Of a DNA stretch of 64,000 nucleotides, positions 2,342 to 64,000 are shown piece after piece; position 1 is the first letter of the stretch, and every line of letters begins with the position of its first letter. A program made the position numbers and the translations under genes. The notes under the pieces are model-generated. The model had not been told where the DNA came from. It worked only from the letters and a program-made list of their open reading frames with translations, and did no database searches. This stretch comes from Klebsormidium nitens (taxonomy: Eukaryota; Plantae; Klebsormidiophyceae): positions 1-64,000 of the forward strand of contig DF237091.1 in assembly GCA_000708835.1 (NCBI GenBank), given 5' to 3'.

Positions 2342-5300
2342 TCATTCCTCCGGCCGCCTCAGCCGCCGCACTTGGCTGGGCGACGCTTCCGCAGCCTCCG
2401 GTTGCACGTCCCGAGGCCTCCTCCGTTGCCCCCCCAGCGCCCTCACTAACGAATCTACCAGCGAGTAACTCTGCCGGTGCGCAGCGGCGGGCGGTCTCGT
2501 AAGACCTTCCCTTTCTCGGGCTAACCCGACCTCTTGCCCCCCCCCCTCAGCATCAGCGCCATGTTGCGCAGGTGTCTCGCCGTTCGGCTCATGGAGCCTT
2601 CTCAAGGTACCCCCGCCCTCGGCCGTGACGTCAGCAGCGGTGAGGGTGACGTCAGCAGAATATCCATGGCTTACTGGAGGCCCCGTGCCACCCAAAGAGG
2701 CGTTTGCAGAGCCACCTCCACCGGCGGGCGGTGAGTCCGTCTGCATGTCTTGCAGCGTGCGCCGGCTATCGAACTGTGTCGCATACCCCGCCAGAAGCTC
2801 CTGCTCGATCGATCCTACCGCCGCAAAAGGTGCCCCCCCGGAAGCCGCTTCCCTCTCCGTAGCGCTCTGCTGTAATTCCCGAGCGATTACGGGTCGGGAC
2901 CTCTCAACGGACACTGTCGTCTGTGCCCCCAAAGACGGCGAATCTTCATTTCGAGCCCCCCCGCCAAAGCTCGGGTGTTCGGCGGCCGTCGAAGCGAGCG
3001 TCAGCATCAGCAGCCCGGCGCGCCGTTCCAGGGGGGACGCCGACAGTGCGCGGCGGCGGGGGGGAAGCGGGGGCAGCCCGTCCATCGACCGGCGCCTCCG
3101 GGGGCCGGGGGAGTCCCCGAGCCCCCCTCCCGTCTCCCAGGCGCTTCGGGACCGAATCATCGAGTCGGACGGGTACACTTGCACGCGGCGAATCTGCGGC
3201 CGGGGGGGTTCCCACGAGAGCGGGTCTTCCTCCGAGGAATTGTCGGGAGACGCCGACAAAGTGCCCGCGTCCACTACCCGCCGTTCCCGTTCCCTGGCGA
3301 CGTCACCTTCCGGCTGCTGCACCGAAGTGACGTCCGGCTCGTCCATCTCGACCTCCTCGGCTGCTGACGTCACCTCGGCTGCGGGCGGTTCCGGCAGCGG
3401 AAAGGGAAGCACGTGCCGCCGGCCGAAGCTCCGCCGCAGCCGTCTCTCCCCGAAACGGGGGGGTCGGACTTCCTGGCCTTCAACCCCCCCTTCGTGGACG
3501 TCGTGCCACTCCCCCCGGATAGATTCTCCATCAGAACCGGTACCAGAGTCGTTACCGCTCTGGTGCCCGTCTGCACTAGAACCCTCCCCGCGACTTCCCG
3601 GCCGCGACTCCGCCCCCGATCTAGTTTCTCTGGCAAACTGGTTCATCAGCCGGTTGTGCATCTCAAGAGCGCTCGTCCTCTCATCGCCGTCCCTCGCCAC
3701 AACGTCACCGTTCCTTAGTCTGACGTCACCGTGCCTCGCTCTGACGTCGCCCCCCCTCGCGCCGTGCCTGGCGGCCCTCTGCGGTTCCGGGTAGTCCGGC
3801 GGCATGGTTTCCAACCAGGCGCTTAACCTTCCTGCCCGCGGATCCGACAAGAACCCCCCGTCTACCCTCCTCAAGGCGCCCGGTTGGTTTGAACCGGGCC
3901 CACCCAAACGGCCAAGCCCTGACCCACCCCGGCCAGAAACCCCACCCAGTCTCGGGTCTCGCCCAACTCTTCTTGTCCAGACACCTAGACCGCCCGGTGA
4001 ATTGGATCTTTCGCTTGGGGGAGTTGCGTCGTTCGCTGGGGCGCCATCCGAGTCCCCCCCATGATGCCGCACTGCTTGAGACTCCCCCCCACGAGGAGAG
4101 CCCGGGAGTCGGAGCGAGCGCCCGATGCGGTGTCGGGCGACCGGAGAGTCGTATCCGAGACTGTCGAAGTCGCCGTCGAAGTAAGAGGGGTGATACTCGG
4201 TGCTGCGCGCGGTCGCCCGGAAGCCGCGTTCGGATGGCGGGTCGGACGGGGGGCCATAGCCGGGGTCTGAAGGAAAGCTCTGTGGGCTGTATAACGGAAA
4301 AACACAGCGTCAACATATAAGGAAGGCCTGACAAGGAAAGGACGCACATCCGCACAGCGAGTCCGGCCTGTTCGACCAGAAGTTCCCACCTGACCGATAA
4401 ATCTGCATCCACCAAGTCTCCCAACAGGCGATCGATCTCACGGTTTCCGAGACCCAAACTTCACAAGAATAACGGCCAGGACACTTGACAGTCTTTACAA
4501 CCTTGAAGCTGTGAATACAGAGGGTCACCTGTCAGGCAGAACTGTGTCGGGCGATACCTCAGCAAAACACCAAGCCCACGGCTCCTCCTTAACCGTAAAA
4601 CCGGAAGAGCAATACAAGATTCCAGAAAGAAGAATTACCTGTCCGGCAGATCCGCGTCTTCCAGCTCCCCTAGGAGGAACTCGAGCTCCCCGTCCCCGTG
4701 CATCTCGTCGCGCATGCGCTGCACCGCCTGGTATGGCAGCTCGGGATTGGTGAACAGCACGCGGTACGGGTCGATGCCGAAGTGGCGTGACGTCAGCGCG
4801 GCGAGCGGGGGGATCTTGACGACCCGATGCTGCAAAAGAGCGAATATACGGGTTTAGTAAGCATGATGATCTCGATCGAGAATTTTTGAAGGGGCAAGGA
4901 CTTCGGCGGACTCGAGAGAGGCAGTCTGACTCGGGGTACCTGGACAATGGAAAGAGATTGGTAAAGAGAGAGGAGACCAGCTTGCGGATAAGGCCTGGTG
5001 TCAAGTGGCGCCTCGTCATTGCAGTACGGGCGGAATTCAACCATGCGGTGTCAACGAGTCGAGGCAAATGGAATCGGTCTGAGGGGAGCGATTGTCTCAC
5101 AACATGAAGCAAGATCCACAACGGAACAGGTGAGCAAGTTCAGTGCGCACTGGCCCTAGTACGGGCACGCGGTGCAAGTCCGACTACACATTGCTGTGGA
5201 AGATCGTAAGAAGACTTGTGCAGGAAAGGAGGACAATATGTAAAGTAAAGCGGGATTAGGAGCATTGAAAGCCAAGACTCCATCAGTTCCAATCTGAGGG

Positions 5301-8300
5301 GAGCAACAGCGAGGGCGGGGGCTTTGACAAGAGTGCCTGATTGTGCGCAGGCAGGGGCATCAAAAGAGAAACAGTTGCTGAGCTCGAAATGCTCACAGCG
5401 TTCCTTCATCATAGCCAAAGTCCTTCCAGTCTTTGAGCAAAACACACCGCCGAAACACGCCTATAAACGCACCCCGAGGAGCAGACGCTTCAACTTAACC
5501 GGTAGAGCTGGCATGCACTGTTGAAACATCTGAGAAAGAGAAGTGAGCCAAATTGGCCTCAATTTCAAAGTCTTTGGACACAAGTGGGCGCAAGAGTGCC
5601 CGTCGGTTGGAAACCATCATCGCCAACTTTGTAAGAAGCAAGCGAGAGTCCACACCGAATCTCTCCAGACTAAATGAAGAACATGAAACTATGGCGTTTG
5701 AGCATGTAGCGGGGGAACCGGAACGGAAGCTCTCCCAGTGGAGAGTATATGGCCACGTATAGGGCCGATGAATGAGACAAACTTAAGCCTGTGAAAGGGG
5801 CCGCACTTCTGCCAATGGAACGTGCCCAGATGCTCAACGAAAAGGGGACAGCCACCCAAAAAGGTCTTCGAGGCAGCAACAATCTCAATAAAGGTAAAAC
5901 GCAACAGGTGCGAAGACCTCTGCAACGAAGTAGATGACTGAAGGACAATCGGCCCTCAAGGTCGCAAAGAACGATGGAGGCGGCTGTTCACAAAACAAAA
6001 TGTTGAAGATTGCTCAAAAGAGTGCGACCGCATACAGCCGGTTGTTAAACAGTTCCTACATCAAAAGGCGCCCGGACTCTGGTCGACTGGAGCTCTGAGC
6101 GAGAGATAACGTGCCCATGCCGCTTGGCTATCACTTCAGGTAAATTTGACAACAAACAAATCTGCGAGACCCTCCGAGGCCAACTGGCAGTGATGTCACG
6201 TCACAACATGAACGACAGGACTGGTCGAGGAACGGAATCGTTTCCTGCTTTTTGCATTTGCGCGAGACGACTGACAACTGTCGATAATCTCGGCGCGAGG
6301 CAGCTGCAACAACCTCCACCACAGTTTATCAGGTAACCAAACTTTTTCGCAGTGAGGAAGCAGTTGGCGACCTTTGAGAGATTGCAACAGGTATAAGAAA
6401 AGACCAAACGCTGGTCTCTCCTTTCAAAGTTGCGGAGGCCCTTTCGCCGAGGACCTGTTTTGAGAGGCTTCCAAGCTAGCAGATACTAGTTAGGCCAATT
6501 GACCCTCGGGAATTATCGTCTGTCCGCTGAGTTCGTCAGACTTTGCAACGTCGCACTGACACCTTCAAGACACTTTCTGCATGCGCTCCTGGACTGCCCC
6601 ATTTGTGCGTCCGATGAGTATCGCCAGAGAAGTATCTTCATTGGCACTTCCTGCTGTCATAGCGCCTTATGCAGATATTGTACAACGTCGGACTCAGCCT
6701 CCAAACTATACAATTACCTCCGCCCAGTGCACAGACAAATCCGCTCAGGTATAATTCCCGCTTTCATACCAGAGCTTGAAAAGAAGTTCAGCACAGGCGT
6801 GAATGCACCGGACAACCTCAGTACCTTTTCGACATCCTGTGAAAGTACGGGCGTGCAAGAAGGCCACGGAAGCACGCTCCGGCATGAAGCCTTGTAACTT
6901 CGAGTACGAAGATTGAGACTGGAGGATCACACTCTCTTTATGAACCTGAGATCCGTCAGTGGCAGCAAGGTCCTCATTTCCAAATGAATCATGACCACAA
7001 TTAACGGTATCAAAACGACGTGCCTTCGTCTGTCTTCAACTTTACAATTGCAGCAGAAGGCGGCTTGGCTTTCATGAAAAATGAATACCTCAAAGGTTGC
7101 TGTTGACAAGGTGGACCCGAAGTAGATTGGGCCTAACGGATGGCTTCATGAAAGACGCGCACCGCTGCGTCCTCCTACTTGCGTTGCATTGGACAAGCCG
7201 CACCTTCATCATGGCCATCGGCGTCGTTTACGACGGTATCTTTCTCTCAACGACATTCTCTGCAAGGCATATGCTTTGGCCACGTTGGCTCAAGGCGAAT
7301 CTTTGTTGGGGCTTAATGCCTATGCGCCAATGGTAGCTGCCGTCATCCTCGCCAATTTGGGCCCCTTTAACAAGTGCAAACTGAAATGTCCCGGAGAAAA
7401 TTTAAGCCCGGGAACTGAAGACGTCACCAGAAGCTGAAGGGGCAAGTAAGAGAACGCGCTTCTTGGAACCAAGTAACAAGAAACGAAGGACAAGGATGGG
7501 CAGCAAAAACCGATCGAGAAGTAAAGGTATAGGCTTGGCTTCCTGAAAGCGAAGAAGTCGAAACCAAGCAGCTTGTGGGCTTGGTAGCGAAAGACAACGA
7601 AATGAAGGCAAAAGGCACAAACTTGCAACGGCACTCTTCGAAGTTCAACGAGGGAAACCTCTTAACACAAGCTGGCTGAAACCCTCCGCTCAAAGTTGCT
7701 TTTCTTGGTCTCCAGAGCAAGCAGAGGCTTTGATACACACAGCTGTTACATCCCCTCCTTGACCGCACCCGTATTAAACCGGAGCACTGCACCCAATTTG
7801 CGTACCCTGCATGCCTACAGTAGTGCTCTACATTGAGCTTGTAATTATTCTCATGTCATCGAAACACATTTCTGGAGTACCGCTCGTTTGCTCCTTGCAA
7901 AAGAGTTTCCAACCCTATGTCCTTGCGACGTTCACAATTTGAGCCTTTTGGGCTAAGAACAGAAGAATACAGGCTATGAGCAGGAAGGCTGGCCATGCTG
8001 CTCAGAGTCCTCTCTTCATCGCGATTGAAGTCGTTCAACATGACACATCGAACACAAATCTGACAGGTTGGCTGATCCAAAACTTTGTGAGTCCAAAAGA
8101 TGTCCACACAGGAAAAACGTCCACACAGAGATACTTATTATGAGGTTTCTAACAGAAATGGACTTTGTGACTTCACCAAAGGAAACGTTCTCACTTCCGT
8201 CACGGTTCTGTCAGACAGACTCACATAACTTGAGTCGGATGACCAGTCTGGTATCTCAATGGTCTACTCAAAAATCACCGAAGTAGCATCACTTGACAGC

Positions 8301-11300
8301 CTCCGAGATCCCAAAATATGTGTGGGCAAAGAATCCTCAAGGCCCAGCGTTAGCTTCCGTCATTGCCACTTTCCCAAAATAAAGAAAAAGCCCAACCACT
8401 TCCCTCAATCACCGACATACGCAATGACTAACAAATGGCGCCAAGCGGGATCCAACGAGGCAGAGACGTGAAAGGGTGACCAAGTGGCTGACCCGAGCAG
8501 CGTCGCCCAGGCAATAGTCGGTTTTCTTCTAGATCCATTTTACACGGTTGAGAGTGCAAAAAGATTCCGCAATCATCATGGGCGAGATACGACAGTCTTC
8601 ACGAGGCATAGCGGCTCTTATTACCCCTTCGTAAAGCCAACTGGGGGACTTGCACAGAATATTGCAAGGCTGTGGGCCGGGCACGAGCCTAGCCAGACAA
8701 TGACCATATTTATCAGCCAAGATAAGGCTTTTATCCTAGACTTTACCGGTGCAATTTTCGCAACAGTAACCAGGTAGTCTTCTCCCGGCAAGGGGAGTTA
8801 CTTAGGGCCAGGTTGCAGCTGAGCAAAATGAAACCAAAAGCAACCCTTCTGAGGAAACCCCCAGAATACCAACAGTCCTTAGACGCCCACATTAGACACG
8901 GGCCACCTAAACGCAAGCTTTGTAATCAGATGCAGATTCGTCCTATGAAAGGCGAGCAGAGTTTTCCAGCTCGCTGGAACTTGTTACATCGAATCAATAT
9001 TGTGTCAGGTGCGTGTCAGGTGCAGGGAACGAAGGAAAAAGATCCGTCACGTCCCCTTGCAATCAGCGCCCGAGGCTGTTGAACCTTGAGCTTTGGCACC
9101 AGGAGAACACTGTGCTGCATCAGCAACATCGAGGATCACATCATTTGAGAGGAGTATCGCTTCCAATTCGTCTGCGCCGTACGCAGAAACAACTCGACGA
9201 CAAGAAACTTTCGAGACTGGTCGCAGCTCGGAAGTCTGCGACCAGGCTTTTGAGATAAAGGCAATCAAGAGTACTGTTCCGGAACAAAGCCCCTGGCTGG
9301 TTGTCAATATGAGTAGTAAGGGCCACGAACGCACGTTGAACTGCTTCAAGCAAAACGAGCTTTTCAAGATTCGGAGACGCAAATGGGCTCTGATGAGACT
9401 GTCGGCGCCCCACTGTGACTGTTATGCTCGTCCTGCGAGACTTGGTGCCAGGAGGACTGCCAGTGAGGCTTGTCGATATTGATTTGTTACAAGCGAGGGC
9501 GATCGTCCTTTCCCCGCAACCCAAACTGCTCAGAAGATGGCAGCATTTACCAGAAAGCAAGTGTGTAGCCTCACCACTGGAAAGGAATGTCAATTCATTT
9601 GACGAGATCCTTGAGATACTCATGGTTGGAACAAGGAAAGGCCACCAATGACAAGAAGGGGCTTGCAATGAAGTCAAATCTGCTTACGTTGCTCCGGCAG
9701 ATTTACCTACCAGCAGACCCCGCGACAATAAGACGACTTTGTTTTCAAAAGACACGAGTCCGTGCTGACAGGGATTCGGTCATCGGCTCAGCATTGCCGC
9801 TCAGCGAATGCTCGATAAGGGAATACCAATACCGTTGTAGCAGCAAAGGACGCAAGGCCGCCATTGAAACGGGAAGAGGAGATTGCGAAGCGCTTCAAAA
9901 TGCACCCCTTGCTTTCGAGACCAGTGGATTATCGGAAATCAGAGAAGGAAGCAGTACAATTGTGATGGGAAGTGCGCCGCGACACCGGAAAAAACACACG
10001 ACGAGTTCGATGACCGTGATATTTGCAGGTTTGGAACGCTAAGAAGTGGAAACTCAAACTAGCGCTCATCTCCACGGCTCAGAGATGTGAGCGACAACCT
10101 TTCGGCCCTGGAAGACGATGAAATCCAAAAGATCGCTCTTCTTAATATACTGAAACCACACTGAAGCAGCGCAATCGCGCCAGAACACCACTGTTCTTGG
10201 ACAACCGGTTTCAATGAAGGAAAGCGATGCTGTCCTAAAAAAGTTCGGCCTATGGCAAAAGGCGTCAACAGAATACGCTACCCTACCCTACTGGGCAGGG
10301 GCGCCCAAGTGGCTTAGCTGCATCATCGCCTTTCATTCCAACTAAATCTCGCAAAACCTTCCGTGTGGTGCCATAAAATTGGAAGACCAGGGCGCACGTG
10401 AACCAACGCCCTTCAATGTAGTCTGGACTGATGCAGATACTTAGTAAAGAGACGTCACAAAAACCTTTCCCCATTAATGTGCTGAGCGATTGTGGTGAGT
10501 AAGCCGAAGAAAGCAGTGCTCAGAAACGCAAGATCGTCAGGCAACGCTTCGGTTGCAAGTTCTCGGGGCACCAGCGAACTGGAACCCGCTTGATTGGAGG
10601 CAGACCTTGTGCAACAGACAGCCCGCACGAACGGAAACATCTTCGGGAAATTGCTAAGAAAGCTTCGCGAAAAACCTGACGCCGAACTTTCTGAGACCGT
10701 ACGTAAGGGCATGAGTTATCAAATCAAAGTCGTTTCTTTGCTACACAGAAGCATCAAGTCAAAATCTCGAGAAGAAAGCCGCTTGCCAAGATATGCCCCA
10801 CCGAGTGAAAATCCTAGCTCGCTGAGTCCGTCCACCAACGGGTGCTTCCGGTAGAAATTTGCAAAAGAATCGCGATGGCCTCTGACTGTGACATCGTGGG
10901 TAGCAGTCCATCAAAGGACACCCACTCTTACAACCTCAATCATAGCCAAAAATGGTGGTAGAAAGAGCGGAGCAAATACACATCACGACGTAAGTAAACA
11001 GAACTCAACCTTGTTAATCGTGGTTCGGGAAACTTCAGCCTGAGGCGTACCTCAGGACAGTTGCATGCGTGTCGTAAGGCAAAGAGCCCCTTTCCTGACA
11101 GCGTCTTTCACGTCTAGAAGGATCACCTTCAGACCTTTCAAAGATCCAAGAGGGAGGCACAGTGGACGCTGCTTTTACTGGTTTATTGGCCAACTGCCCC
11201 ACAATACGAGTCGTCCGTGTTGTGAGGGCCGGATTCCCCACCATGCGACACGCTTCCAAGCCCAGAAGCAAGGGAAGGGGAGCAATGGAGAAGAGCAAAA

Positions 11301-14300
11301 ATGGGACCAAAGACGAAGTCTAATCTTGGTAGAGAAGCAATTCATTGCAATCTTGACCTCTACCTTACCATCCGACCATGCAATCTGAACGCGAACCAGA
11401 GGAAGCAAGTTCGGAACCCCACCGGGACAATTGCTGCTGTTCGTACAGCCAGTCAATTGAAGTTCCCATCCCAAATGAGAACTCCTTGCAAGTTTGTTCT
11501 CGGGGAAAACGAAAACAACATTTGCCAAAGCAAAGCCAATCCTCTTCCCAGGACCCACCTCGCGAGAATGTCGCTGGTCGAACAGCCCCCGCACCGCGCC
11601 CCCCATCTCGTAGCAATGCCCGCACATGTCAAACCCCAGCGCCTCTTGGCAGCCCTTGCACTGATACCGCTCCCCAACGATCGGACTCTGCCCGCACCCA
11701 TCGCATCCCACCCCGAAATGCACCACGTATTTTGGGCCCAAGTCTTCAAGAAGGCGTTCCGTCATCGCGCGGAGGTTGAAGGGCTCCCCCCGTCGGACGA
11801 GATCGGCGTGCGCAGAAAGGAGGAGGGAGCGGGTGCGGGACATGGCGGCCTGGACGGTGGGGGGGCGCTCCGGGGGAGGAGCTGCGGGGAAGGGGACACT
11901 GTCAGGCGTTTGGCGTGATTTTGCTGGCTCTTCGGGAGAAAAACGGTCAAAGGCCGCGGAAATACGTAAATCAAGACAAAACGGAAGCAGTTGTAGCTCT
12001 TGGGTGAAATTACCCCTCCCAAAGGAGCCGTCGGAGAGCTACCAACGACGAACCGACTGATGACGGCGAAATCGAAGAGGTTGACCTCCGGGAGGAGGAC
12101 TCCGACGAGCCAGGTCCTGGCCGTTCAAAGTACCCCGACATTATGGACGACCACTCCGTCTTAGAGTACCTGGAGGACGGATAAGCTACAGAAGGGTGCA
12201 AGAACAGGAAGGGGATACAAAATTTAGCAGCATCTCTGAAGCATCTGAAAATCTTCTGAACGCAGTTGGATTTCGCAAACTCCCCGGTTAAGAAAGCAGG
12301 CATCTAGACATGATCACGGAGCGCCTACCAGAAATGATCTCTGACAAGGCCCCCGAACGCGTCAAGCGCAGCACAAAACCAGATACAAGAAAGAATTTCG
12401 AAGCTTCAACCAAGCTACAAAAGCTTACCCGTTGGCTCTGCTGCCCCACTTGATGCTTCCTGCGCCGCCGCTTCCCGTGCTCGGGCTGCGGACGCTTCTG
12501 GAAACGCTCTGGAAACTAGATCGGCGATGGTTGCACAGGGGACCAGGTTGCCCGGGCTCTCTGCTTGCATGATGCGGCAGAGGGGGCAGCGTGGGTCCGA
12601 GGAGCGGGTGCGGATGCACGAGAGGCAGAAAACTGCGGAGGACCACAATATGAGTATGGTTGGAGAAACAGTGTTTTCGTCCATTTGATTTTTGGAAGCT
12701 GTGAGGACACTTGGGGAAGGGGGAACATCGAGACGGCACAAGACAATCAGTAAAAGGTGGCGAAAGAACGAATGGGGAGAGTAGATGCAAATTGAAACCG
12801 TGGCAGATCGTTTGCACGCATATCATGCAGGATTCGGAATCGATGCCTCCAATCACAGCAAAGAGTAGCTTCTCGAACATGTCCCAAACCCTCAAAAGGA
12901 AATGTGCGTTTACTGTGTCCACATATCCATCGTCCAAAATCTTGTGTCCAACACTCTCTCCTCACCGTGTCCGCAGACAAGAACGGAAGGGTCGTGCAAG
13001 AGCCGCGAACAGAGTTTGCACCCAAAGTCGACACCCCGAAACGCAAACTTCGTCTCCGGACCCGCGTATGGATACGGACGCCGCTGACCGCCGCTGGTGG
13101 AGGCTCCGGACGGTCCGTTAAGTCTCAGAACCGCCCCAGTTGCGCCGCCGCTGAGAAACTGGTTAGGAGGTTGTTCCGAGCTGGATGTCTGGGCGATATC
13201 GAAGGTTTCGGCTGGAGGTTGAGGTCGGGGGGATGGTTCGAGAAGAACCGGGTCCGTTTCGAGGTCTTCTGCGGCGATCTCTCGTCGCTCCCTGTCCGCT
13301 GCAATCAACATGGGGAAGTTGACAATCGAGGAGAAGTAAGGCACCGACAACTTCCTTTGATAACATTCATTATGAGACACGTTTACGTATCTCGATCATC
13401 TAACACTCTGATTCATGGGCAAGGAAGATGTCGGTGTTGGATCGCAATCTGTCAACTGACCAGCAAAACAAGCCTATGCCTTTTTCCAAGCATAGTGCCA
13501 TCACAGACACGTCGACAACTATCTTACACATCACATAACGTTCCTTTTAAGAGGGCCTTCGAAATGGTCACTTCCGTCAGCAAGTCCACCGCCCTTGAAC
13601 TAGGGGGGTCTGGGGCCCAAGCTTGTGACTCCCCCCCCCACTCTCCAGGTATGTACCCTACGACCAAGTGATCGAAATAGCATTGCAACCTCAATCTTAA
13701 CGCCCAGAACGCCCTTGTTTGAAGTACGAAATGGATGATCCGCTGCCCACCTAGGATCTCAGCCTGGCGCTCTCTGTACTCTATGGGGAATGCATTCCCC
13801 AAGAAGAAGTGGAGGAGGCCGCACGTGCGTGCCAGGTGGCCATATTCGCGACGGCAGAGGGGGCAGTTGGACTCAGACACGTTGTTCATGCTCTGGTGCA
13901 GACACCAGAAGCAGAACATGTGCTGGCACACATTGACAGCGGGCTTGAAGACTAGGTCCCTGCAATGAAAAAAGCAAGGTCCATCGAATTGTCTTCAGCT
14001 CCAAGCAAGAAACTTGATATTAAACGGCTGCCTTATCAGTCATCTCCAGTCAGAATCCAGTAGAATGCCTTTCAGTGCCTTGGTAAAAAAAGCATGTTTC
14101 CTGGGTCTGCACTTTGCCCAATTATTTCTCACATCGGAAAGGCTTCCAGGATCTCAGCTTCTTCTAAGTGACACGAAAATCTGTTCATAGAAAAGGTGGC
14201 AGAATCAGGGAGAATGTTCACAATCACAAGTAGTTCTGGTATAATGGAATCGATGGCAGGAATGTGCCTCTAAAACAAGAAGCTGCAATGAGAGTCCCTG

Positions 14301-23684: not shown

Positions 23685-23892
23685 GATCAAACATACAAAC
23701 TGTGTATCAGCGGGAGCTCAGGAACCGGCAACACAGCCACGGAACAGTGTCGGTTTCGGCTTCCTACTTCGTGGACAGGGGGTCGGTTGACGTGGATAAC
23801 CCCCTGGTTTATGGGTGACTAGCAAGCGGGGTGACTACGTACGAGCACGCTTGATGTCAAGCAATGTTGAGCCCACAACTGACGCAAGAGGC

Positions 23893-24307
23893 ACAAAACT
23901 CGTGAACTCCTTTCGAAATTTCGGACGCGGACGGTTCCTGTCGCCGGTCATGTCGACAAGGCTTCCGAGCAGTCTATTTTCCGTCCGAACAACCGGGTAG
24001 TCCTAACCACACTTAAAACCTAAGAATGAGTGCTCAGCCGTTAGTGGGAACCCTAATCTAAGAGCAGTCACAGGGAAGGAACGCGACTCTGACAAATCGT
24101 CACAGTAAGTGGCGTGACCCTAACACACCATCAGTGCGTTATGACTCAACCCTAATGTCACAAAGACTGCCCGGTTGTTCTGCCGGGTACCGTACGGGTT
24201 CTAAATGGTTCATACCGTCCGCTGAATCTTATCGCGACGGTACCACTCGAAACACTGGGCAAAGACCGTCCGCGTCCGAAATTTCGAAAGGAGTTCGCAA
24301 GTTTTGT
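23893..24307. mobile_element. About 415-bp inverted-repeat (MITE/foldback-like) element
   Basis: Perfect 32-bp inverted repeat at 23904-23935 / 24265-24296, extendable to about 43 bp with mismatches. The interior has several (a)ccctaa/cctaa motifs. No TSD identified. Confidence 0.65.
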
Positions 24308-24409
24308 ACGTTTTGCACAACCAGTGGGGCCCGGGGTTTGAACTTGAAGGGAGATATTAAGGTTTAACTTTCAAGTGGAGCGACTTTGGTCCGCTCAGGA
24401 CATCTACTA

Positions 24410-24601
24410 CCGTACTGCTACGTAATTTCGGCAAAAAATAAATACTTATGTGCCCTGCCGAATTCCGCTGGAAAATATTTTGGAGCGATAATGGTCGATA
24501 ACGGTATATTTTAGCAGGTAACAATAGGTCTGCCGAAACGATAGAAAGTTTCATAATTAAATTTTCGGCGTCGAAGGTGCCGAAATCAAATAGCAGTACG
24601 G
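24410..24601. mobile_element. 192-bp Tc1/mariner-like MITE just upstream of the F-box gene
   Basis: TIRs ccgtactgcta....atttcggca / tgccgaaat....tagcagtacgg. TA on the left (24408-24409) and (g)TA on the right; internal tgccgaa repeats. Confidence 0.7.
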
Positions 24602-24642
24602 GTAATACATGCCGCATTGGAGCTACCTTAGCGACGCACACA

Positions 24643-42597: not shown

Positions 42598-42653
42598 TCG
42601 GACGACCACGCAACTGCAGTCACTATCGGACGACCACGCAACTGCAGTCACTA
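42598..42653 (+). repeat. 28-bp perfect tandem duplication
   Basis: tcggacgaccacgcaactgcagtcacta x2. Confidence 0.92.
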
Positions 42654-48139: not shown

Positions 48140-48682
48140 ATGGATATGCAGGACCAGAGCACAGCCACAGATGCGGCGACAGTCTCTGAAACGTCAACTT
48201 TGTCAAACCCACCAGCTTGTAGCAGCACCAGTGCACTTCGGGCACAGCTCGCAATGCTCGCAGCAACTTTAAAGCAGCTGCAGTTGGAACACCCCTTTCT
48301 CATGCGCTGCTTCCTTGCTCTTAGAATTTTGGCTGCGGTTGCGCTGGTCCTGGGCTCCATATGTTTGGCGTGGTTCCTGGCCTGGAAAACGGTCCTGCGA
48401 CATGTGGGTTTCATAAGAGACATTGTGCACGGGGTGCTGGGGGTGAAAAAGCCCCAGAAGAAGCGGCAGACATACGTGAGGAAGTCTGGAGTGGGAGTGA
48501 CGGGGCCGCAAGCGTCGGGTGTCATGGGACTCGGGAGCGAAACGGGGTTGAGGTCAAGCAAGAGCGAAGCGAGGGGTGGTGTGCAGTCTGAGAGAAACCC
48601 GGATGTTGAAAGAGTAATAGGTGGGACTGAAAAGTTTCCAATGCTGAGCGGTGCTGGAATGCATCAAAGAGGCACAGCCTGA
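48140..48682 (+). CDS. Uncharacterised small membrane protein (one or two TM helices); upstream exons possible
   Basis: 180-aa ATG ORF with hydrophobic stretch FLALRILAAVALVLGSICLAWFLAW followed by a basic tail; divergent from the AKR gene. Confidence 0.5.
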   Translation: MDMQDQSTATDAATVSETSTLSNPPACSSTSALRAQLAMLAATLKQLQLEHPFLMRCFLALRILAAVALVLGSICLAWFLAWKTVLRHVGFIRDIVHGVLGVKKPQKKRQTYVRKSGVGVTGPQASGVMGLGSETGLRSSKSEARGGVQSERNPDVERVIGGTEKFPMLSGAGMHQRGTA

Positions 48683-52800: not shown

Positions 52801-55800
52801 TTAATATTGTTCGCAACAAACCGTTAGCAGAATCAACGATATGGTTGTTGACAATAATCGCGCGAGAGCGTTGAGCAGACGCCACCAATGCAAGATGCAA
52901 GATGCCTCCTCACTCCGCTCTCCACGAACTTCAAGCATCGCCAAAGCTAACATGTACAAGGTCTTGCTTGCGACTTTTCAGATGTCGGTATTTGCCACTT
53001 TCAGCTCCAGATAATTGCAACTTTTCAGAAGGAGCAAGCGAAAGAAGTGTATCGAAGCGTACCTGGAACATCATGCTGGCCATGGGCCAGGCCGCGCGCG
53101 TGTTTGTGAGCGTTGCCGCTTTCAGGATGTGCTGCCCAAGCCCCAGAATGCCGCATACGTTGCCCGCGGGGATGCTGTCCACCGCCTCGAGGCCGCGGCC
53201 CATGATGAGAAACAGGCCCTCTACGACAGCCTCCTGTGGAGTGCGGAAACGTATTGACTTCAGAACGCACTTTTTAAAATTGTTCGCTATTCGCTGAAGT
53301 TATCAGGAATGTTAGGTCGTGTTGGATCAATGATTCGGCGGCACCAGTGGGAAAGGAGTGACAACGAGAAGCGGCGGTTTTCGAATGTTTGAATCCGACC
53401 AGCACCTGACACAAGCAGGCTGATGAGAGAGTAGGATTTTGTTTCAGATAGTCTCCACCAGTCCTGAACATTTGGTATGTTCGTAACTTCACGCAGTAAG
53501 TTCAGGGCATCATCAACACCAGCTTGCCGCACCTTCCTTAGTGTTCCGAGACACAGTGTGCGGAATCGTCACGAAGTCTCACTTGAATGTGACGTTTCGA
53601 TCCCTCCGGATCCGTCGGATCGTACCCCCCCGACAGCACGAACACGCGCTGGCCCTCTCGCAGCCGCCCGCTGAAGACCCGCGCAAATGCGACGAAGCAC
53701 TCCCCCTTGCCGGACGGTCCCGCGTCCGTATCTTCGCTCCCTCGGACGTCCGCCTGGTCCAGGTGGTACTCGCGGCCGGGGGGCCGGCGGGGGAGTTGCT
53801 CAAAGGGTACGGCAATCATCTGCAGAAGGATGAGTCTGGTTTGAAGGCTGCAGCGAGAGTGAAGTCGAGATGCAATAAGCGACCTCAGATTCCAGCTGTG
53901 TCGCAACAAAGCTTCTTCCCTTCAAACCCGAATTCGCGGCCCGGGGGGCCGAGGGACAGTGGCTCGGAGGAAAGGACGATCCTCTGTACAGGTTGGGATG
54001 TAGAAGACGCAGGCCTTTCAAGCCAAGGGTATCTCTGCAACCGGTTCTTGCACCTGTGTCCAAATCGTCGCTTCCCTCAACGAACGTCTGATTCATCGGT
54101 GTCCATGACTGAGAGCCGGCGCAAGAGTTGCTCACAAGCTGAAAGCAGGGTCTGTGCCAACATCTGGGCCTACCTTGGACACAAACACCATGCAAGGCGC
54201 CCCGGGGACCCCGTCGCAATTCTCCACGGCAGTGTCGATGCGCGCAATCTCCTCCACGAGCTGCGTGGGCGCGCTCGCGCGCACGAGCCGCTTCGGCAGC
54301 AGGCGCGGCAGGCGGTCGGCTTGCGCCTCCCGGGGCCCCGGCAGGCAGGAGACGACCATGCCCAGGACGGCCTCCGAGAGAGGAAGCCACCTGGACAGAA
54401 CGAGTTTCAGTGAATATTGGAAGTGAAAAGCAACGGTTTTCTGGCAGCAATTCTCGTGACGGTAATTTGTTTAGAGGCCTTCAAAAATTTCCGCAGCAAC
54501 GAAGGGAGCGGGCAGACAGGAGACGATCATGCCCAGGACGGCCTCCGAAAGGGGAAGCCACCAGGTCAAACCGAGTTTCAATAGATTTCAACAGAACTAT
54601 CGCCGGTCTTCATGGAATATCTTTGACGACACTTGATTCGCTTCCAGCTCTTTTCGGCCCCCTGTGGTTCGTCAACATGGAACCAGACGTCGAAAGTGAG
54701 ATCGTTCTAAGACGGGCGTTCGGTGAGACTTTTCCCGATTTGAGACTTTGATGGCAATCCAACGATTCCATTTCCAGAATGATGTGGAGTGGTCGGTTAT
54801 ACCAGATCACCAATGTCTTTCGGAGGCAGCGACACACGCCTGACCCGAGAGAGCATCTACTTCACCTTCAGGAAAAAGCACCTCATACTCCTCCAACTTC
54901 GCGATATTCACCATCTCAGCAAGGCGTAACCCCACCTGCTCATCACCGCCTGCAATGCCACGCGCGTGTCCTTGTGCTGCAGGTCCCGCGCCGGCACCGC
55001 CAGGTTCATCGCCCTCACGATCTTGGCCACTTTCTCTCCCCGCTCTTGTTCCTCGCTATCCAGCACAGCTGTGTATGCCTGCCAGACGGGCTCCAAGCAG
55101 AACTGCGCAAACATGGGCTTAAGCCGCCCGGCTGCGGCCTTCCGCCCGACTATCTTTTTGGTCTTGGGGTGGTAGTAACGGTCGCCCCAGAGGGCGCGCC
55201 GAAGGGCCTTTTCGCTTGCGCCTAACTTGCTCGCGTACAGCTCGGCAAACTGCGGAGAAGTAGAGGCTAGGATGAGTTCGTGCTTCGCTTTGTGAAATGT
55301 GAACGGCTGTGTGCAATCCAATGAGAGAGCCCCGAGAAAGTCCAAGGGTTGCCGAGAGGTCCAAAATGACAGGTACACAAATTGGCAGCGAGCCAAAGTA
55401 CGCATTTGCTCGAGCTGATCCAAGCAATCTGCGCATACAAGGCTTCAATCCGAGCTTTCAACACACGTTCTCAGAAGGACGCAACCCCAACACGGAAGTA
55501 GCAGAAGAGCATTGGTCGCTCAAGTCACGGGGGGAGGAGAATGCAATGCCCATGAAACGACTCCTGCAGAAATACCAAGCCCAGGGAGCCAGATGCAGGT
55601 GTAATTGAAACGAACGCTGAATGAATGCTGCAGGCAAAAGCTCCGATTCGACGGTCGTGTGCGTGATATAAGACATGCCGGATCTGTCACATGTTACGAA
55701 CCTGTTCGATCCTGAACGCCCATCCGTCCATGGCGCTTGCAAACGCGACATTGCCCTTCTCAGGTGCGAACGCGTCCTCCTCGTCTTCGTCCAGCAGTTC

Positions 55801-57876
55801 GTCTTGCTCTTCCCCGCCATCCTCAGGTCCATTCACACCATCCGTGTTCGGACCGGCCAGCACTGCGTCCACGTCCGAGATCCACTTCTCAGAGCGGAAG
55901 CCGTTAATGATGTTGTTGACTTCAGCAATGATAGCCTGCAACAAGTGAAAAAGCGGAACCGGTCAATAGAGAGGGTTGGACTCGAAGCTTAGAGCGTCCT
56001 AGAGACTCCATGCGCAAAACGTTGTTGGGAAGGATTCGGAAATCTGAAAAGGAGAATCTGAATTCAAACACATATTGAATGAAAAGATCGTTATGCTACA
56101 ATCAACAGTCTTGAAGGCATAGTAGTACAACCATTGGGCTGCTATGACCAGCTTTCTCACAGCTGTGAAGAAGACAAAGCTGAGTCAAAGTAAGGATATC
56201 AGTGCCAGGCTTCGGATCTTCACTCTCTTTGGTCGTACAGGGTTACGAGTAAGGAGGGTTCTCCCAGTCCCTTTCTTGATTTCCTAGGACCGCATATTAA
56301 CAATCTCAGTCACTCGTTTTTTCAAAGTGAAGCATGTGACTGCGTCAGATAGTGATGCAACTTACAGACACAATGTGAACGCATCAACTGACAAACTCCC
56401 TACCTTCATTCGCTCATATGCCTCCAGAGGCGTCAGCCTAAGTTCCATAATGAGGCGGTCAATCTTGTTGAGCACCAGGCACGGCCGCACTCGCTCCTCC
56501 CACGCTTGCCGGAGTACTGCATGGGTCTGGATGTGAACGCCCTCTGCAACGTCCACCAAAACAAGGCCTCCGTCGCTCAACCGCGCCGCCGTAGAAACCT
56601 GCCACAAGAGACTTGGCAAGTTGCTTACTTGTCGATTAATCTCTTAGATGGTTCAAATGGTAGGTGGTGCTTCGACAAGAGTTTAGCATTATGTGATAAA
56701 CAGCTCGGTCCACCGTGATCACGAGAAATAGCAGTACTGTTTGGCAGCCTTGAAGGCACGCACAGTCAAGAAGTGTGGAATCAGGGTCAGCCAATGCAAG
56801 AGTGCTGAATGAGTGGGTGGCTTTGCTTCTGAAGACCGCTGAGCAACATGTTTGACAAACAACAGGGTGGGAAGATACCCGTTGCTATCGTCTCTCCGAG
56901 TCATTTAACTTAGTGAACGGCACCACTCAAGCACCTCCGGCATCACCCCAAGCTCCGCCACTTATTACCACCATTTGCTAGACAACACGCAAGACTTCAT
57001 CATCATCATCTTATGTGAGCTACCACACTCTCATGCCACTACTTCGTATCACTGAATCTCTTGTTGCCAATCATTACTGTTACTGCTCTGATTGGTGGTG
57101 TACTCCCTGGAATCCCGTAGAGCCCTCAGATCCTTCAAAGCTTAAGCCAACTATGCAAATGACCAGTTATTTTGCCTTGAAGTGGCTACAATTTCAGACA
57201 TATCCTGATGTTGCAAGTTCGTGTATGTCACGCAAAAGGTTTGAAGAGCGCACCTCGCTGCAAAAGTCCACGTGGCCGGGCGAGTCTATCAGGTTGACTA
57301 GATACTCAGGGCACTTAGCATCATATGCCGCCGGTTGCTTGGGGCGGAACAGCAGCGAGATAGAGCTGCTTTTCATTGTGATGCCCCTTTCCTGTGAAAA
57401 GGAGATACTTATTTGATTAGCTTACCTCTTTAAACGACAATTGCTTCCTAGCAGTGGTGCTCGGTGGTGGAACCATTTGATTGCATCATTACGACAAGAG
57501 CGTCATAGCTCCACTTGACCGCTTACCCTTCACCGAGGAGACTTGCAGCGGCAATGCAGAGAATCAACTACAGCAAGTCGTTCTCAGATATTGCACCACC
57601 ACTAACCACAAACAAAAGCAGGTTACAATGAAGCCATCTTTTTACCACAGCAAACCATTCACAAATCCAGTCTCAAGTTACCTGTTCATCCTCCCTGTAG
57701 TCCATGTACCGCAGCTTGCCAACCATCTTCGGGTGGATGAGTCCATTGCAGGCGATCAAGTTGTCGGAGAGCGTCGTTTTACCATGGTCCACATGCGCCA
57801 GCACGCAGATGTTCCGGATGCATTCGGGGCGCGCCTGCAGCGCCGCAAGCTGCTCGACGCTGGCGGTGATGCTCAT
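49884..57876 (-). CDS. EFL1: Elongation factor-like GTPase 1 (EFL1/RIA1, 60S maturation), 1172 aa, 12 exons
   Basis: Exons 57876-57682, 57391-57254, 56598-56404, 55935-55702, 55249-54936, 54390-54174, 53819-53583, 53233-53063, 52665-52480, 52296-51037, 50576-50385, 50063-49884 (3519 nt). G motifs [25 protein letters not shown] and NKIDRL; C-terminus [32 protein letters not shown]. Confidence 0.96.
54505..54561 (-). pseudogene. Young pseudo-exon copy of the 5' part of EFL1 exon 6
   Basis: Reads [19 protein letters not shown] vs real [19 protein letters not shown], 171 nt upstream. The acceptor reads gacctg instead of gtccag, and the adjacent intron sequence (aaactcg) is also duplicated. Confidence 0.92.
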
Positions 57877-58391: not shown

Positions 58392-58723
58392 AAAGATTTT
58401 TGTAGGATACTTCTTTGAAAAGTCGCATCGTGAAACATTGCTGCCTCTTTGTCAAGGTTGATCACACTGTGCAGAACAACTTTGGCGCCCCAATAGTGCC
58501 AGGTCTGGCGTCAGCCGTCCATGTGTTTCAGTTCTGCCCCGTCACATTGACCCTAGAATCTCTTTGTACGGTGCCTGCGCAAAGCCGCCAGTACATCACT
58601 GGGTGCACTCGGTCGGCAGGATCCATCACTCGGAAAGGGCCTACAACGGATTTCGACCAAACGTAAAGTCAGGGCTTTCATTAGAGAGCTGCGAGACAGA
58701 CTGCGGTTGCAGCAGGATTAAAG

Positions 58724-61700
58724 ATGGTCCGAAATGTATATGGCAAGACGGCATGGGGAAAAGGTACGAGGTCAAGCTGTGCAGAGATGAATGATGCGCC
58801 TATTTCAAGCTGCTTGTCATTGCAACTGGAAAGTCCTGTGCATACACTTTTCTCTCGCTGCACACTCGTGTGCAGCGAGAGAATTTGCTGACTTTCATTG
58901 CTACTACAAGAGGCCGCGTTTGAGGTTGTAGATAAGAAAGTAAAAAAGCACAGTGTGAGCTAACGAGGGTCTGTGATGCAGCATTCCTTGACGCCCTGGG
59001 TGCTTTTGACGTCAGCAACAGGCTTGGCAGGGGCAAGACCTATGCAAACACTGGCAAAGTGCTCTCAATCAACATGCAAGGGAGCCAAGTGAGTTTCTTT
59101 TAGTGCTGATCTATCGCTCGTTCATTGCAATGCTGTAATCACAATTCCAGCTTGAAATTTTCTGCTCACAATCTGTAACATCTGTGTTAGGTCAGCTCAT
59201 ATGCATAGGGACTTGTCTTCTTTATCTCTCCAACTTAGGCCACATTGCTGCTTGGAGATGATGTATGATAGGGCTGATCAGGCTTTGGGGCTTGTTGCAC
59301 AACCTGCCTCTCTCTATCATTGCTTTCCTCTATTTCCAATCTAGCCCCAATTAAAAACTTTTATAGCCGGACTGGCAGCAACTGGCAGGGCCGTACATGA
59401 ATACTTTCTATGACTGTTCCAGGTGCAAGCCCGGGTGCAAGGCAGTTTTGCCCCTTTCTACAATGTTGGCATCCAGTTCTCAAAGATGCCAGACTCAGCG
59501 GTCCTCTTCGACGTTGTTGGGAAGAACCCGATGCTGCTTGCGCATATCCTGGTGAGGGCCATCGTCTACAACAACAGGAGCTCACCTGCAGGCTGGCTGA
59601 TAATCACCTTTCTTTGAAGAATACTAGGCTGGCTTCGACGCTTGGAACTTAATGCAAACGTCATTGCCTCCAAGTTGTCTCTTGCCAGCCATAGAGGGAC
59701 TCCTAATGTAAAGTTAGTAGAAGGGGAGAAAAACCTTCGTATCGTTTTTGCATGCCTGCCATCAGACCATCATGCACGCCTCTGATTTTTGGGTAGAATC
59801 TTCGTCACATACTTCTCCCAACCCTTTGAGGCATCAAAATCATCGATTGGTGAGAACTCCCTACTTTTCTCTATGCAGAACAACGAGCTCCCCAGCGAGC
59901 TGCTCACAAAGCTGCAGGAGCGGCGGGTGCAGTTGCTGCCCCGCTCATGGAGTGAGATGAAAGGCAGCTGCACCTGCCCCGACAACCCTGGCCCCGGCAA
60001 CCCTTGCAAGCACCTGGCTGCGGTGTACCACATCATCACTACGGAGATCGACCAGAACCCCTTCACGCTCTTCCAAGTGAGCCTCTCAGCGGAAGCGTTT
60101 TCTTGGTTTCATCTTGATTTGAAAAGTAGGCACGATGCAGATCTGTCTCTAAGGTCGTGTTCAGCTTCGTTTCTACCTTATAAGCCGAGTTTCACATTTT
60201 AAGAATTCTGCCAAAGCGTGCAACCAAATTTGTTTAAGGTGACAACTTATTTTGTTAGGCCAACCTTCTCAGACTAATACTCCAAACTTTCTGATGAAGC
60301 CCCTGCTGCAATGCAATTTGCAAAGAATCCGACCTCTTGTCCATGTCTTTGTTACGAGGATGCATGACGTCCATAGTATGAAATCCAAAATAGTCTTATA
60401 GAACTCTTTCACCAATGCATCTCTTCTCTGCGGTCATACCTGCGAGGCCTCAGATTACCAACTGATCCCCCATCAATCAGTTCGCCACGGAGGTGGCTTA
60501 TCTTTCACAAAGTACTCCTCTTTGATAGCTCCTATGCTGCCATCTCAAACCCCGAATCCTCTGCAGCTCCGCGGCGTCGACCTTGCCAAGCAGTTCTCCA
60601 TCAAGCAGTCCGCCACGGAGGTGCCATACCCACTCCCCGTCCAGCGAACACGAGACGCAGCAGGGGCAAGCACGAGCTCTGAGGAAGTCCCTCCAGAGGC
60701 GGAGGCAGTTCAGCCCGTGAAACTGCTCAAGATTGCCAGCAATGCCAACTTCGTCCTGGGATGCCTGGCTAACAATCCTCCCTTCTCGCTCTCGCTCAAC
60801 TACAAGGTGCGCAAATACTGGGGATCGAAGCATTGTCTTCAAGATTGATCCGCCAAGCTGAAAGTTAGAAGCTTCAAACACCCCTGTTCGGATCTACGGT
60901 ATTCCTTCTTGAGAAGCTTATCTGGTCGTCTCATGTCGTCTTACTTTCGTTTCATTGACCACAACGGGATCTGCAAAAGTAAACCCCCGAACCCTGTCTT
61001 CTTCAGGACGTAATGACGGAGTTCTACACCCACGTTGGCAAGAAGCACAAGGCGGTGATGCAGCTGACAGAGCCGTGGTGGACCGCTGCCCAGGAGGGCC
61101 CCGCTAAGGATCGCCTGCAGCGGGTCGTCTCTCACAGCAGATGCGCTTGCCAAACGTTTCTGCTTTTGAAGGGTCAGCCGTGTCCTTGTTTCTCGGCTAC
61201 AACCTATCGGCGATTCGCCATTTTCTTCGTCCTAACCGCTTTCCTTCATCTAAGGTGAAGTGCGGGAGCATAAATCCCTTACCCTCATGGGCGCGGGAAG
61301 GAGTTCGAGCCATGAACTATTTACAACATGACACGTTTTGAAACAAAATGAAACGGACACCTCAATCAGTCGACACGATAGCCGCATGATGGCCGGTGGT
61401 TTGTTGTGTGCCAACAGGGAGTGAGAAAACTGTTCCATTCGGACGGAGTGTGCAAAGCACTGAATCAGATCCAAGTCAACACTACCAAAAACTTATTCAG
61501 CTGCGTTTTGGCGTCGTTTTCTCCTTGTTCTGACGCGGCCTCTTTCCTCTTCCTGCAGCTTCTCTCTTCGACTAAGTAAAAACTTCGCCAAGCCCAAGCT
61601 TCTGCTGACCAACCAGCTTTTCGAGGCTGAGGCAGACCCTGCCGAGGTAAGCGGACCGTGTAGACCCGTCATTGACTTCAACTTTTCTGGTATTCCATTT

Positions 61701-64000
61701 GGCAGCGTGTTTGTTGACGTCCTTGTGCTGTAGGTCGGCTCTTTAATTTTCCTCATCACGTTTCTTGAGCAGGAACAAAACCACGAGGAAAGCGGCGGCC
61801 CTGCTTTCCACTGTGTGTTTGATTGCCGGGACGCCATCGCCCCACCTTCTTCAATTTTTGAAAGTGCCCGGATTGTCCTCTTTGAATTGACATTCTGAAA
61901 GCCGGCCTGTCCGCAGGTGTTTTGTGGGATGCCCTTCGAGCGGGTGGCTCCGGACACCATCTCTGTGGACGTCCTGCCGTTCTTCAAGGTGCTTCTTCAG
62001 CTGCCGTCCGATGTCGGCTCGCTCTCGTACCGCTTCTTCTTCTATGCGGCCAGGTGAGATGCAAACGAGTGGTATCCAGAGAACGGCAGCCTTCGAGCTG
62101 AGTCTTACAAAACGTTGAAGGACGTAAAGAAAGTCAAGCATCTGTTTGTGGAAACCTTTAGAGCTGCTCGTCTTTCCAGATATAAGCACAGTCGTTCCCA
62201 TTTCGGACGCTTTTGTTCGTCCAATCTGTCAGTATTCCACCTTATGATTATTCCATATGGTTCTGACTTGTATGGGAACATGATATACAGCTCAAAGGAG
62301 AGCACCAGAGAGGCGTATATAGAGACAGGGGGGTCATCGATGTAATCCTTTCTGCCTCCTCGCAGGGTGGCGTACCTTCTCTTCTCCACCTGCTCCTTCA
62401 CGCCTGCGGTGCTACCCCTGGACGAGCGCCGCTTCAAGATCGTCTTCAAGCCGCTCGTTTCGTCAGCCGCGGTTGCGGAACAGCTCGAGAGCGTGAGAAT
62501 TTCTTCGAATTCAAAACCTGAGCTTTTGCGTATGCTGCGCAAGATGGTCAACGATGCCTTCGGTATCGTTCGCTAGAGTCTCCCAAGGTTTGTTGCCTGC
62601 AATTTCCTGAAGGAACGACGACTCCTCACATTGCCTGCCAGTATTTTCTGGATTGATTCTCGACGATTCTCAACCGCATTGGCCATCACAGCAATTTGGA
62701 AGTCCTGCTCAGAAGTCATTTGTCCGCATTCCGTTGCGAACAGCATTCGCCTCGTCCTTGACAAGGATGATTTGAGTGTGGATTCATTGCGAAGCCTTCT
62801 ACCTTTTCCCGTAACGCTTTTCCCGGTTAATGGCCAGACCCGAAGTCTGTTTCCAGCGGGCTCGTGGGTGCATTGCTTGCGCCCCCCCGTCATCTGCACA
62901 AGAAATAGTCACTTCCATAGCGATCAGACCCACTTCTTCGGCTCCAGACAAATCAACCACCGATAACTCGAAATCTGCATGATCGCTGCAGCTGGCTGCT
63001 GCATACCCTGCAAACGACCCGTGCGTCGTTCTTGATGGGGAGGGCCCCCTGGCCGCCGAAAGCGGCACGCTGCACTGCGTCATGGCGGCCCTCACGCGGA
63101 GCGTCGCCAAGCTGGACTTCATGCACAAAAAACTCAAGGTGGGTGACGTCCTATCTTAGCCTATCGTTGAGCTTCTCAAGAGCGGAGGGGGGCCTTTGTT
63201 GAGCAAAGGCGCATGGGCGCGACAAGTCGTAATACCGCCCCTTTCGGGCAAGTTCTGATCGTTGTGGAGGAACTCGACTACTGCTTACCAAAAATGAAGT
63301 ATTGGTATCCTATCCTCTGACGGGTCCGTCTCACCCAGGAACATGTAAAAGCCGGAAACGAGGCCTCACCTGTAAATAGCCGCTTTGTCAGCAACGCCGC
63401 TGACGTCCTCACGAAATGCCCCCTTCAATTGATTCTGTTCAGCTTGCTTTTAATCAGTCTCGTTATGGTCGTCTTTGCAGGACAACCCTCCCAAGGAGTC
63501 CCTTGCCTTCTGGCGCCAGCAAGATTTCCACATCATGGCCCTCTCGGAACCGAGCACGGCCGCGGCCATTGCCAAGTACTTTGGTACGACCACCACTTTC
63601 TTCGACTTCTGGACCAAAAAAGCTCACCTTTGGCGCCTGAATTCAAGATTCGAAGGCCTATCGTTTGGAAAGTAGGAATCCACGGACTCGCTTCTTCCAT
63701 TTCAAGGATGCGAAACTTTCTACTAATCCAGACTTTGCGCAAAATAACTTCTGAAAGCATGCGGGAAGACGGAATAACCCTCTTGGTGCCTTTCAGCATT
63801 TTTTCGCCTCAAATCACTTGGTGGCCTCTTCCGCAATCTAATTTTCGAGACGCCAACAGTTGTTACGGCCCTCCCGACAACCGACCTGTTCTCTCGCAGG
63901 CCTGTTCGACCTTCTCAAGTTCGACATTGATGTCGAGATTCGGGTGCTTAAGAGCGAGACCGAGGCCCCAGACCCAGCCACGGGCATCAGCCCTTACACC
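58724..64000 (+). CDS. Bacterial-type SWIM zinc-finger protein, probably the N-terminal part of a SWIM-SNF2 helicase; truncated by the window end
   Basis: Exons 58724-58763, 58982-59088, 59423-59551, 59879-60076, 60567-60806, 61007-?, about 61558-61647, 61917-62055, 62366-62492, 62992-63138, 63481-63574, 63901-end; the junction near 61.1-61.55 kb is unresolved. Peptides YGKTAWG, RLGRGKTYANTG, ARVQGS, SWIM motif CTCPD..PCKHLAAVYH and EIDQNPFTLFQLRG. The helicase domain is not in the window (inference). Confidence 0.8.
60440..60505 (+). pseudogene. Pseudo-exon copy of the 5' end of SWIM-gene exon 5
   Basis: ccccatcaatcagttcgccacggaggtggcttatc vs real ctccatcaagcagtccgccacggaggtgccatacc, 127 nt upstream of the live exon start. 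The preceding bases are atac rather than gcag. Confidence 0.88.

Follow-up and report, generated by a model that had tools for sequence, protein, structure and literature searches.

The stretch of DNA analysed here, positions 1 to 64,000 of contig DF237091.1 (assembly GCA_000708835.1; hereafter the window), comes from the streptophyte alga Klebsormidium nitens and is intron-rich, with eight spliced genes and 52 introns in our curated models. Three of these introns hold decayed same-strand copies of the start of the exon that follows, which we call ghosts. A previous sequence-only reading had named the genes, and its labels were borne out by Pfam matches on single exons: an EFL1-type GTPase (EFL1), an M2/M3-like metallopeptidase (the peptidase gene), an alpha/beta hydrolase, an aldo-keto reductase (AKR), a SWIM finger gene, a HIT finger gene (SWC6/ZNHIT1-like, here SWC6), a ZZ/RING gene (PRT1-like, here PRT1) and an aladin-like WD protein gene. 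The same reading had claimed that most introns in all eight genes contain degenerate copies of the next exon. Solid copies were found in three of about 52 introns, two of them in EFL1 and one in the SWIM gene, and thus in two of the eight genes; the four copies amount to about 630 nucleotides (nt) of about 26 kb of intron sequence.

The gene models were obtained in two ways. RNA contigs of four public runs were placed on 51500-57400, which defined eight EFL1 introns exactly; RNA support is limited to these. The other seven genes were modelled with a splice-aware ab initio dynamic-programming gene finder trained on the EFL1 exons and on long open reading frames (ORFs). A finder based on codon usage only was too weak, and early runs over-split genes or fused neighbours, so that the eight genes were curated by hand, using splice sites, protein sense and Pfam; one missed AKR exon was added later. 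The models outside EFL1 are curated predictions, with Pfam matches on some exons. Being approximate, they could contain errors that weaken a signal, but such errors cannot generate one.

The youngest ghost lies in EFL1 intron 5 (54391-54935, minus strand, 545 nt, GT..AG ends), whose splice joint is present in RNA contigs of four runs. In the ghost core (54504-54588, minus strand), 27 nt of acceptor region are followed by 58 nt from the start of exon 6; the core aligns with the live 3' end of the intron and the start of exon 6 (54333-54417, minus strand; exon 54174-54390) with a Smith-Waterman score of 290, 70 of 85 positions identical (82%) and a Kimura two-parameter (K2P) distance of 0.20. 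When the window was searched against itself with BLAST, a single nucleotide-level tandem pair was returned, at this very acceptor: 54340-54409, that is, the last 19 nt of intron 5 and the first 51 nt of exon 6, matched 54511-54580 on the same strand with 88.6% identity over 70 nt. Weaker gapped similarity extends through about 116 nt of intron, giving a head-to-tail unit at about 54507-54677 with a period of 171 nt, made up of about 116 nt of intron and about 55 nt of exon. Identity is higher over the exon part and the acceptor than over the remaining intron part, as expected if one of the two exon copies is under constraint. The ghost has CTG where the live acceptor has CAG, and the spliced RNA contigs skip it. 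One low-depth contig (depth 2.4, one run) spans the ghost region unspliced at 54530-54777, with an A>G difference at 54726, and is probably a retained intron or pre-mRNA.

The following intron of the same gene, EFL1 intron 6 (53820-54173, minus strand, 354 nt, splice joint in RNA contigs), contains two ghosts of the start of exon 7 (exon 53583-53819; live source, including the 3' end of the intron, 53719-53848, minus strand). Ghost 1 (53930-54008, minus strand), some 160 nt upstream of where the live exon 7 begins, carries 29 nt of acceptor region and about 54 nt from the beginning of that exon, and scored 141 with 70% identity and a K2P distance of 0.39. Ghost 2 (54053-54166, minus strand) covers roughly the initial 101 nt of the exon. 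It is found about 330-345 nt upstream and starts 7 nt past the donor; it scored 161, with 74% identity and a K2P distance of 0.33. The 99% value of the shuffle null was 113 in both cases. All three units keep their register in a three-way alignment, and each reads CAG at the acceptor position. The two ghost units, with a period of about 160-180 nt, and short gaps fill almost the whole intron.

An intron so nearly composed of copies could have been born de novo by tandem duplication of coding sequence, as in the gain described by the Rogers model, instead of being an older intron that was lengthened. The resemblance is that one coding copy becomes intron and the mRNA is unchanged; moreover, 354 nt is about two units of 160-180 nt, and with ghost 2 beginning so close to the donor there is scarcely any non-ghost sequence. 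Several features nevertheless argue against a birth of this kind. The exon junction is AAG|AT and not the AG|GT of the model, the ghost sequence starts 7-25 nt past the donor and the length of the unit is not divisible by three. Unlike the units of a Rogers-type gain, those observed here contain pre-existing intron sequence and an acceptor: each includes 29 nt of non-coding sequence that resembles an acceptor region and has its CAG in register. The model also predicts that the 3' end of the intron resembles the end of the upstream exon; no such similarity was detected, and units from upstream-exon ends were not enriched in these introns, a comparison with low power for 30-nt pieces of this age. 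As for EFL1 intron 5, its junction is CAG|GT, yet its ghost includes intron sequence. We therefore consider de novo birth of EFL1 intron 6 improbable, and lengthening of an existing intron the better account.

The third case is intron 3 of the SWIM gene (60077-60566, plus strand, 490 nt), predicted by the ab initio model with GTGAG..CAG ends; the exon upstream of it carries the Pfam match to the SWIM zinc finger. In the ghost (60424-60502, plus strand), acceptor region precedes 64 nt from the start of exon 4; it corresponds to the live acceptor and start of exon 4 at 60557-60630 (plus strand; exon 60567-60806), 127-133 nt downstream. It scored 160 against a 99% shuffle value of 101, with 74% identity and a K2P distance of 0.32. 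Its acceptor-equivalent CAG has become CGG and a 1-nt deletion breaks the frame.

Tandem exon duplication gives rise to mutually exclusive exons or to dead duplicate exons, and the ghosts share with it a same-strand exon copy in the adjacent intron. They could be functional, as decoy or alternative acceptors for regulated unproductive splicing or as mutually exclusive exon starts. Both ghosts of EFL1 intron 6 keep CAG at the acceptor-equivalent position, and in the exon part of the EFL1 intron 5 ghost three of four differences fall at third codon positions. This last bias has a p of about 0.11, however, and purifying selection on the live exon would produce it in any case. In addition, the two best-preserved ghosts have lost their AG, frameshifts and stops occur in the ghosts, and no contig in the four RNA assemblies joins any of them, which is weak evidence against alternative inclusion since contigs drop rare isoforms. 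Unlike in tandem exon duplication, it is the exon start that was copied and not a whole exon with both splice sites: 58 of 217 nt (EFL1 exon 6), 64 of 240 nt (SWIM exon 4) and at most 101 of 237 nt (EFL1 exon 7). A function for the copies is thus extremely unlikely, and they are better regarded as dead sequence.

We then considered how far the phenomenon extends, because the sequence-only reading had proposed introns built from decayed next-exon copies as a general architecture. By the criterion that it set itself, namely that intron-versus-downstream-exon scores no better than controls for most introns would refute it, this claim fails in the window. We compared 51 introns with 59 exons, all against all on the sense strands, by nucleotide and three-frame protein Smith-Waterman alignment with length correction. 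The downstream exon gave a median z of 0.06 (nucleotide) and -0.36 (protein) over the 51 introns, equal to that of random exons of other genes, and the comparison with downstream, upstream and random exons revealed no general excess for the downstream exon. Scores were no better than those of controls in 48 of the 51 introns, and three survived. What could be seen was a tail, with four of 51 downstream pairs above z = 3 against 1.2% of foreign pairs; upstream exons and reverse-complemented introns showed no nucleotide tail, and a protein tail only at the background rate.

Tests anchored at exon edges gave the same picture. With the first 90 nt of the downstream exon, five of 49 introns exceeded z = 3 (Kolmogorov-Smirnov p = 0.0035), and the test was flat for the end of the downstream exon and for both ends of the upstream exon. 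Junction units of 30 nt of intron and 60 nt of exon, also used as 30-residue peptides, agreed, and without the top five the mean dropped to the control level. Once the three solid introns were removed, the other 48 were indistinguishable from three control exon edges, taken as a mean (Wilcoxon p = 0.50, nucleotide and protein). When 120 exon-edge junction units were searched with nhmmer against all introns of the window, four matches were obtained in total, each between an acceptor unit and its own upstream intron: EFL1 54391-54935 (E = 6e-14), the SWIM gene 60077-60566 (E = 1e-4), and the first and second copies in EFL1 53820-54173 (E = 9e-4 and E = 0.06, respectively). Neither nhmmer nor self-BLAST found cross-intron matches within the window, that is, the dispersed copies that an introner or transposon origin would entail.

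The same cases emerged when the gene models were set aside. In an annotation-free scan of 90-nt segments against their 1.2-kb same-strand flanks, the three acceptor-spanning pairs were among the four best outside GC-rich exon interiors. Their scores were 290, 160 and 141; an AKR exon-to-exon pair followed with 135, and a duplication internal to an intron of the hydrolase gene (period 93 nt) ranked next. When the window was compared with itself by six-frame tblastn, same-strand matches were in modest excess (34 versus 17 at 24 bits or more), mainly owing to GC-rich low-complexity exons, and the search recovered none of the weaker examples on which the general claim had been built.

To determine what these tests could have detected, mutated 120-nt junction copies were planted in the other introns and scored with the anchored test. 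Copies with 0.4 substitutions per site were all detected (100%), as were 90% of those with 0.6, 29% of those with 0.8 and 10% of those with 1.0. It follows that copies with more than about 59% identity to the exon cannot be present in most introns; older copies cannot be distinguished from noise by any reader.

The individual examples given for the general claim fared unevenly. Each quoted peptide was found in its place and on its strand, and the EFL1 example is a strong nucleotide copy, with a chance expectation of 0 in a word test that counts equal or better matches of any exon word in an intron of that length. The nucleotide scores of the other five pairs were not above shuffled controls, and these are short peptide resemblances. 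By chance, 0.03 word matches were expected for the SWC6 example, 0.07 for the SWIM pair FSGIPFGSV/FCGMPFERV, 0.52 for AKR and 2.65 for the peptidase gene in its intron; since about 52 introns had been inspected by eye, expectations of 0.03 to 0.07 are likely to turn up by chance. The hydrolase pair FHG/LHG was below the shuffle mean (protein p = 0.87). An array of ghosts that had been proposed for a 6.7-kb interval of PRT1 scored 120, below the 95% shuffle value of 130. The sole weak example with several concordant hints is a possible copy of the start of SWIM exon 8 (61683-61758, plus strand), which reached an anchored z of 3.6 in nucleotide and protein. It scored 89 against a 95% shuffle value of 100 and had no nhmmer match, and we keep it as a candidate.

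Taken together, the idea that introns of this genome are in general made of decayed next-exon copies can draw on three real cases, one of them an intron almost wholly composed of ghost units, and on two further introns, SWIM 61683 (z = 3.6) and peptidase 27931 (z = 3.1), that align to the exon start and rank high in the test of the first 30 residues. Against it stand the median of the downstream exons, the 48 introns at control level, the high detection rate for planted copies and the chance expectations of the named examples. As a description of most introns in all eight genes it is very improbable. What stands of the process that had been proposed is local tandem duplication leaving a dead copy of an exon start, in three introns; its pervasiveness does not stand, and the replacement of exons that it invoked is unneeded to explain the polarity.

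Outside the three introns, two donor-side candidates were found. In SWC6, a possible echo of the end of exon 3 and its donor (34337-34377, plus strand) lies 118 nt into the following intron; it scored 101 (shuffle p = 0.002, z = 4.3), had no nhmmer match and is a weak candidate. In PRT1, the end of exon 5 with its donor has an open, in-frame copy at 4388-4451 (minus strand; source 4637-4700, period 249 nt), with a score of 118 (shuffle p<0.001), a 64-nt ungapped exon part and the donor in register. The peptides read LLGELEDADL in the copy and LLGDLVDADL in the source. The copy sits in a 69-nt segment (4390-4458) bounded by a weak GAAG acceptor and by a GT donor, and it may be a mini-exon that was duplicated and retained, or else a ghost on the donor side.

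Of three further high-scoring pairs, one was rejected: PRT1 12633-13750 (whole-exon z = 4.2) is a gappy, GC-rich alignment with 54% identity, in an "intron" that probably contains missed exons. The other two, EFL1 52666-53062 with a protein z of 3.0-3.6 and peptidase 28317-29091 with a z of 4.0, did not pass the shuffle tests and are kept as unproven.

Two duplications of other kinds were seen. AKR exon 5 and its donor (44733-44820) resemble the end of exon 4 and its donor (45143-45228, both minus strand; score 140, shuffle p<0.001), although the two exons code for successive conserved segments of the aldo-keto reductase fold. In the hydrolase gene, 38589-38657 and 38682-38746 (plus strand) form the intron tandem duplication of period 93 nt noted above, with 68% identity; the window has no other clear duplication of this kind confined to an intron.

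Some further features of the window were recorded in passing. In the 6.7-kb PRT1 interval (4900-11500), up to 26% of sampled words occurred in the RNA contigs of one study and none in those of others. Part of the interval is transcribed under some conditions, be it exons that the model missed, a non-coding RNA or a nested gene, so that it may not be a simple intron. No ORF in it had a Pfam match reaching the family cut-off (best E = 0.046, well under the cut-off). Between AKR and EFL1, an ORF at 48140-48682 (plus strand), outside the eight genes, has a DUF4750 domain (E = 1e-11). An inverted repeat (23884-23935 and 24265-24316, 90% over 52 nt, arms about 330 nt apart) lies just upstream of a single-exon F-box/LRR gene (24577-26025) and possibly marks the ends of a small mobile element. 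A 28-nt perfect tandem repeat in two copies is found at 42597-42653, in unannotated sequence downstream of the AKR gene.

How did the ghosts arise? We consider it highly probable that the three introns are relics of small head-to-tail tandem duplications across the acceptor, each of which lengthened the intron. Units of about 130-170 bp would have been duplicated head to tail, each across an existing acceptor, copying 27-116 nt from the end of the intron and 54-101 nt from the beginning of the next exon. The downstream copy, which alone is still joined to the rest of the exon, would remain the working acceptor, and the upstream copy would turn into intron sequence, lose its AG and decay, so that the intron grows by one unit per event. 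The duplication, presumably by replication slippage or break repair, need not have been targeted; two filters might then have shaped what is seen. Selection would remove copies lying wholly inside exons, and copies related to a constrained exon would stay recognisable about twice as long as intron-only copies. An acceptor-spanning copy would be harmless only when the downstream acceptor is used, and we take the surviving copies to be neutral.

This account agrees with the geometry of the ghosts. All are same-strand tandem copies next to the live junction, with periods of 171 nt (EFL1 intron 5), about 160 and about 180 nt (EFL1 intron 6) and 127-133 nt (SWIM intron 3), and the aligned units span -27 to +58, -29 to +54 and -10 to +64, respectively, relative to the exon start. 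RNA contigs show for both EFL1 introns that splicing uses the acceptor of the downstream copy, and the gene model predicts the same for SWIM. That AG has been lost in the two best-preserved ghosts, as CTG in EFL1 intron 5 and CGG in SWIM, fits the need for the downstream acceptor to be used. The polarity follows from the partial nature of the copies: as these are confined to exon starts, only the downstream copy is still joined to the rest of its exon and must be the live one. Ages are graded, with K2P distances from 0.20 to 0.39. The acceptor lies after about 116 of 171 nt in the unit of EFL1 intron 5 and after about 29 of 164 nt in that of EFL1 intron 6, and these differing positions fit untargeted placement and argue against a fixed anchor.

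Some observations sit less easily with tandem duplication followed by the two filters. No donor-side ghost as clear as the acceptor-side ones was found; this asymmetry, three introns versus none, has a one-sided p of 0.125 and is only suggestive. Two units in EFL1 intron 6 leave about 25-30 nt of ancestral intron, unless there was a later deletion or the intron was itself born by duplication. The SWIM gene model is a prediction, RNA support covering the EFL1 introns only. Finally, three introns cannot separate random duplication plus filters from a mechanism aimed at junctions.

Such a mechanism, favouring junctions and most of all acceptors, could repeatedly duplicate units of about nucleosome size (130-170 bp) and be a main route of intron growth genome-wide, with the window as a sparse sample. 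All four solid copies are on the acceptor side and unit sizes cluster at 127-180 bp, observations that, coming from three introns, have no statistical power. From the geometry of introns of about 450 nt and units of about 150 nt, about one third of surviving duplications would be expected to span the acceptor; by this estimate the excess of three acceptor-spanning cases over one intron-internal case is not significant (p about 0.1). We regard a junction-favouring process as rather unlikely, and untargeted duplication with subsequent filtering as the simplest account.

Events of this type have precedents. Small intragenic duplications were reportedly described as common by Gao and Lynch (PNAS 2009), who are said to have noted that those containing splice sites can leave the transcript unchanged. 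That introns can be created or changed through tandem duplication is an established model, supported in vivo (review PMC3443670), and cases are known in Drosophila (PMC2891723). Closest in structure is the potato gene for RNA-dependent RNA polymerase (RdRp), where the unit likewise consists of branch and polypyrimidine region, acceptor and exon start, the copies are same-strand and in tandem, and splicing signals are inherited. In potato RdRp the upstream exon copy is partly coding and an additional intron was made via a cryptic donor. In the K. nitens window, by contrast, the upstream copy is wholly intronic, so that the intron is lengthened, no new intron is made and the protein is unchanged; and, unlike in potato RdRp, the event recurs, with four copies in two genes. 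Our literature search found no paper on such events in Klebsormidium. The copies described here are further cases of a known kind of event, intron growth by tandem duplication.

A genome whose introns are mostly built from copies would, if real, matter for models of intron growth; the window gives no support for one. What it does provide is a calibrated test, combining junction units searched against own and foreign introns with the sensitivity to planted copies, which is applicable genome-wide. It is seldom possible to trace where intron sequence came from. In the window, the source can be read directly for part of three introns, and for almost all of EFL1 intron 6. These introns thus provide clean, dated cases, from a streptophyte alga, of lengthening through tandem duplications that span a junction.

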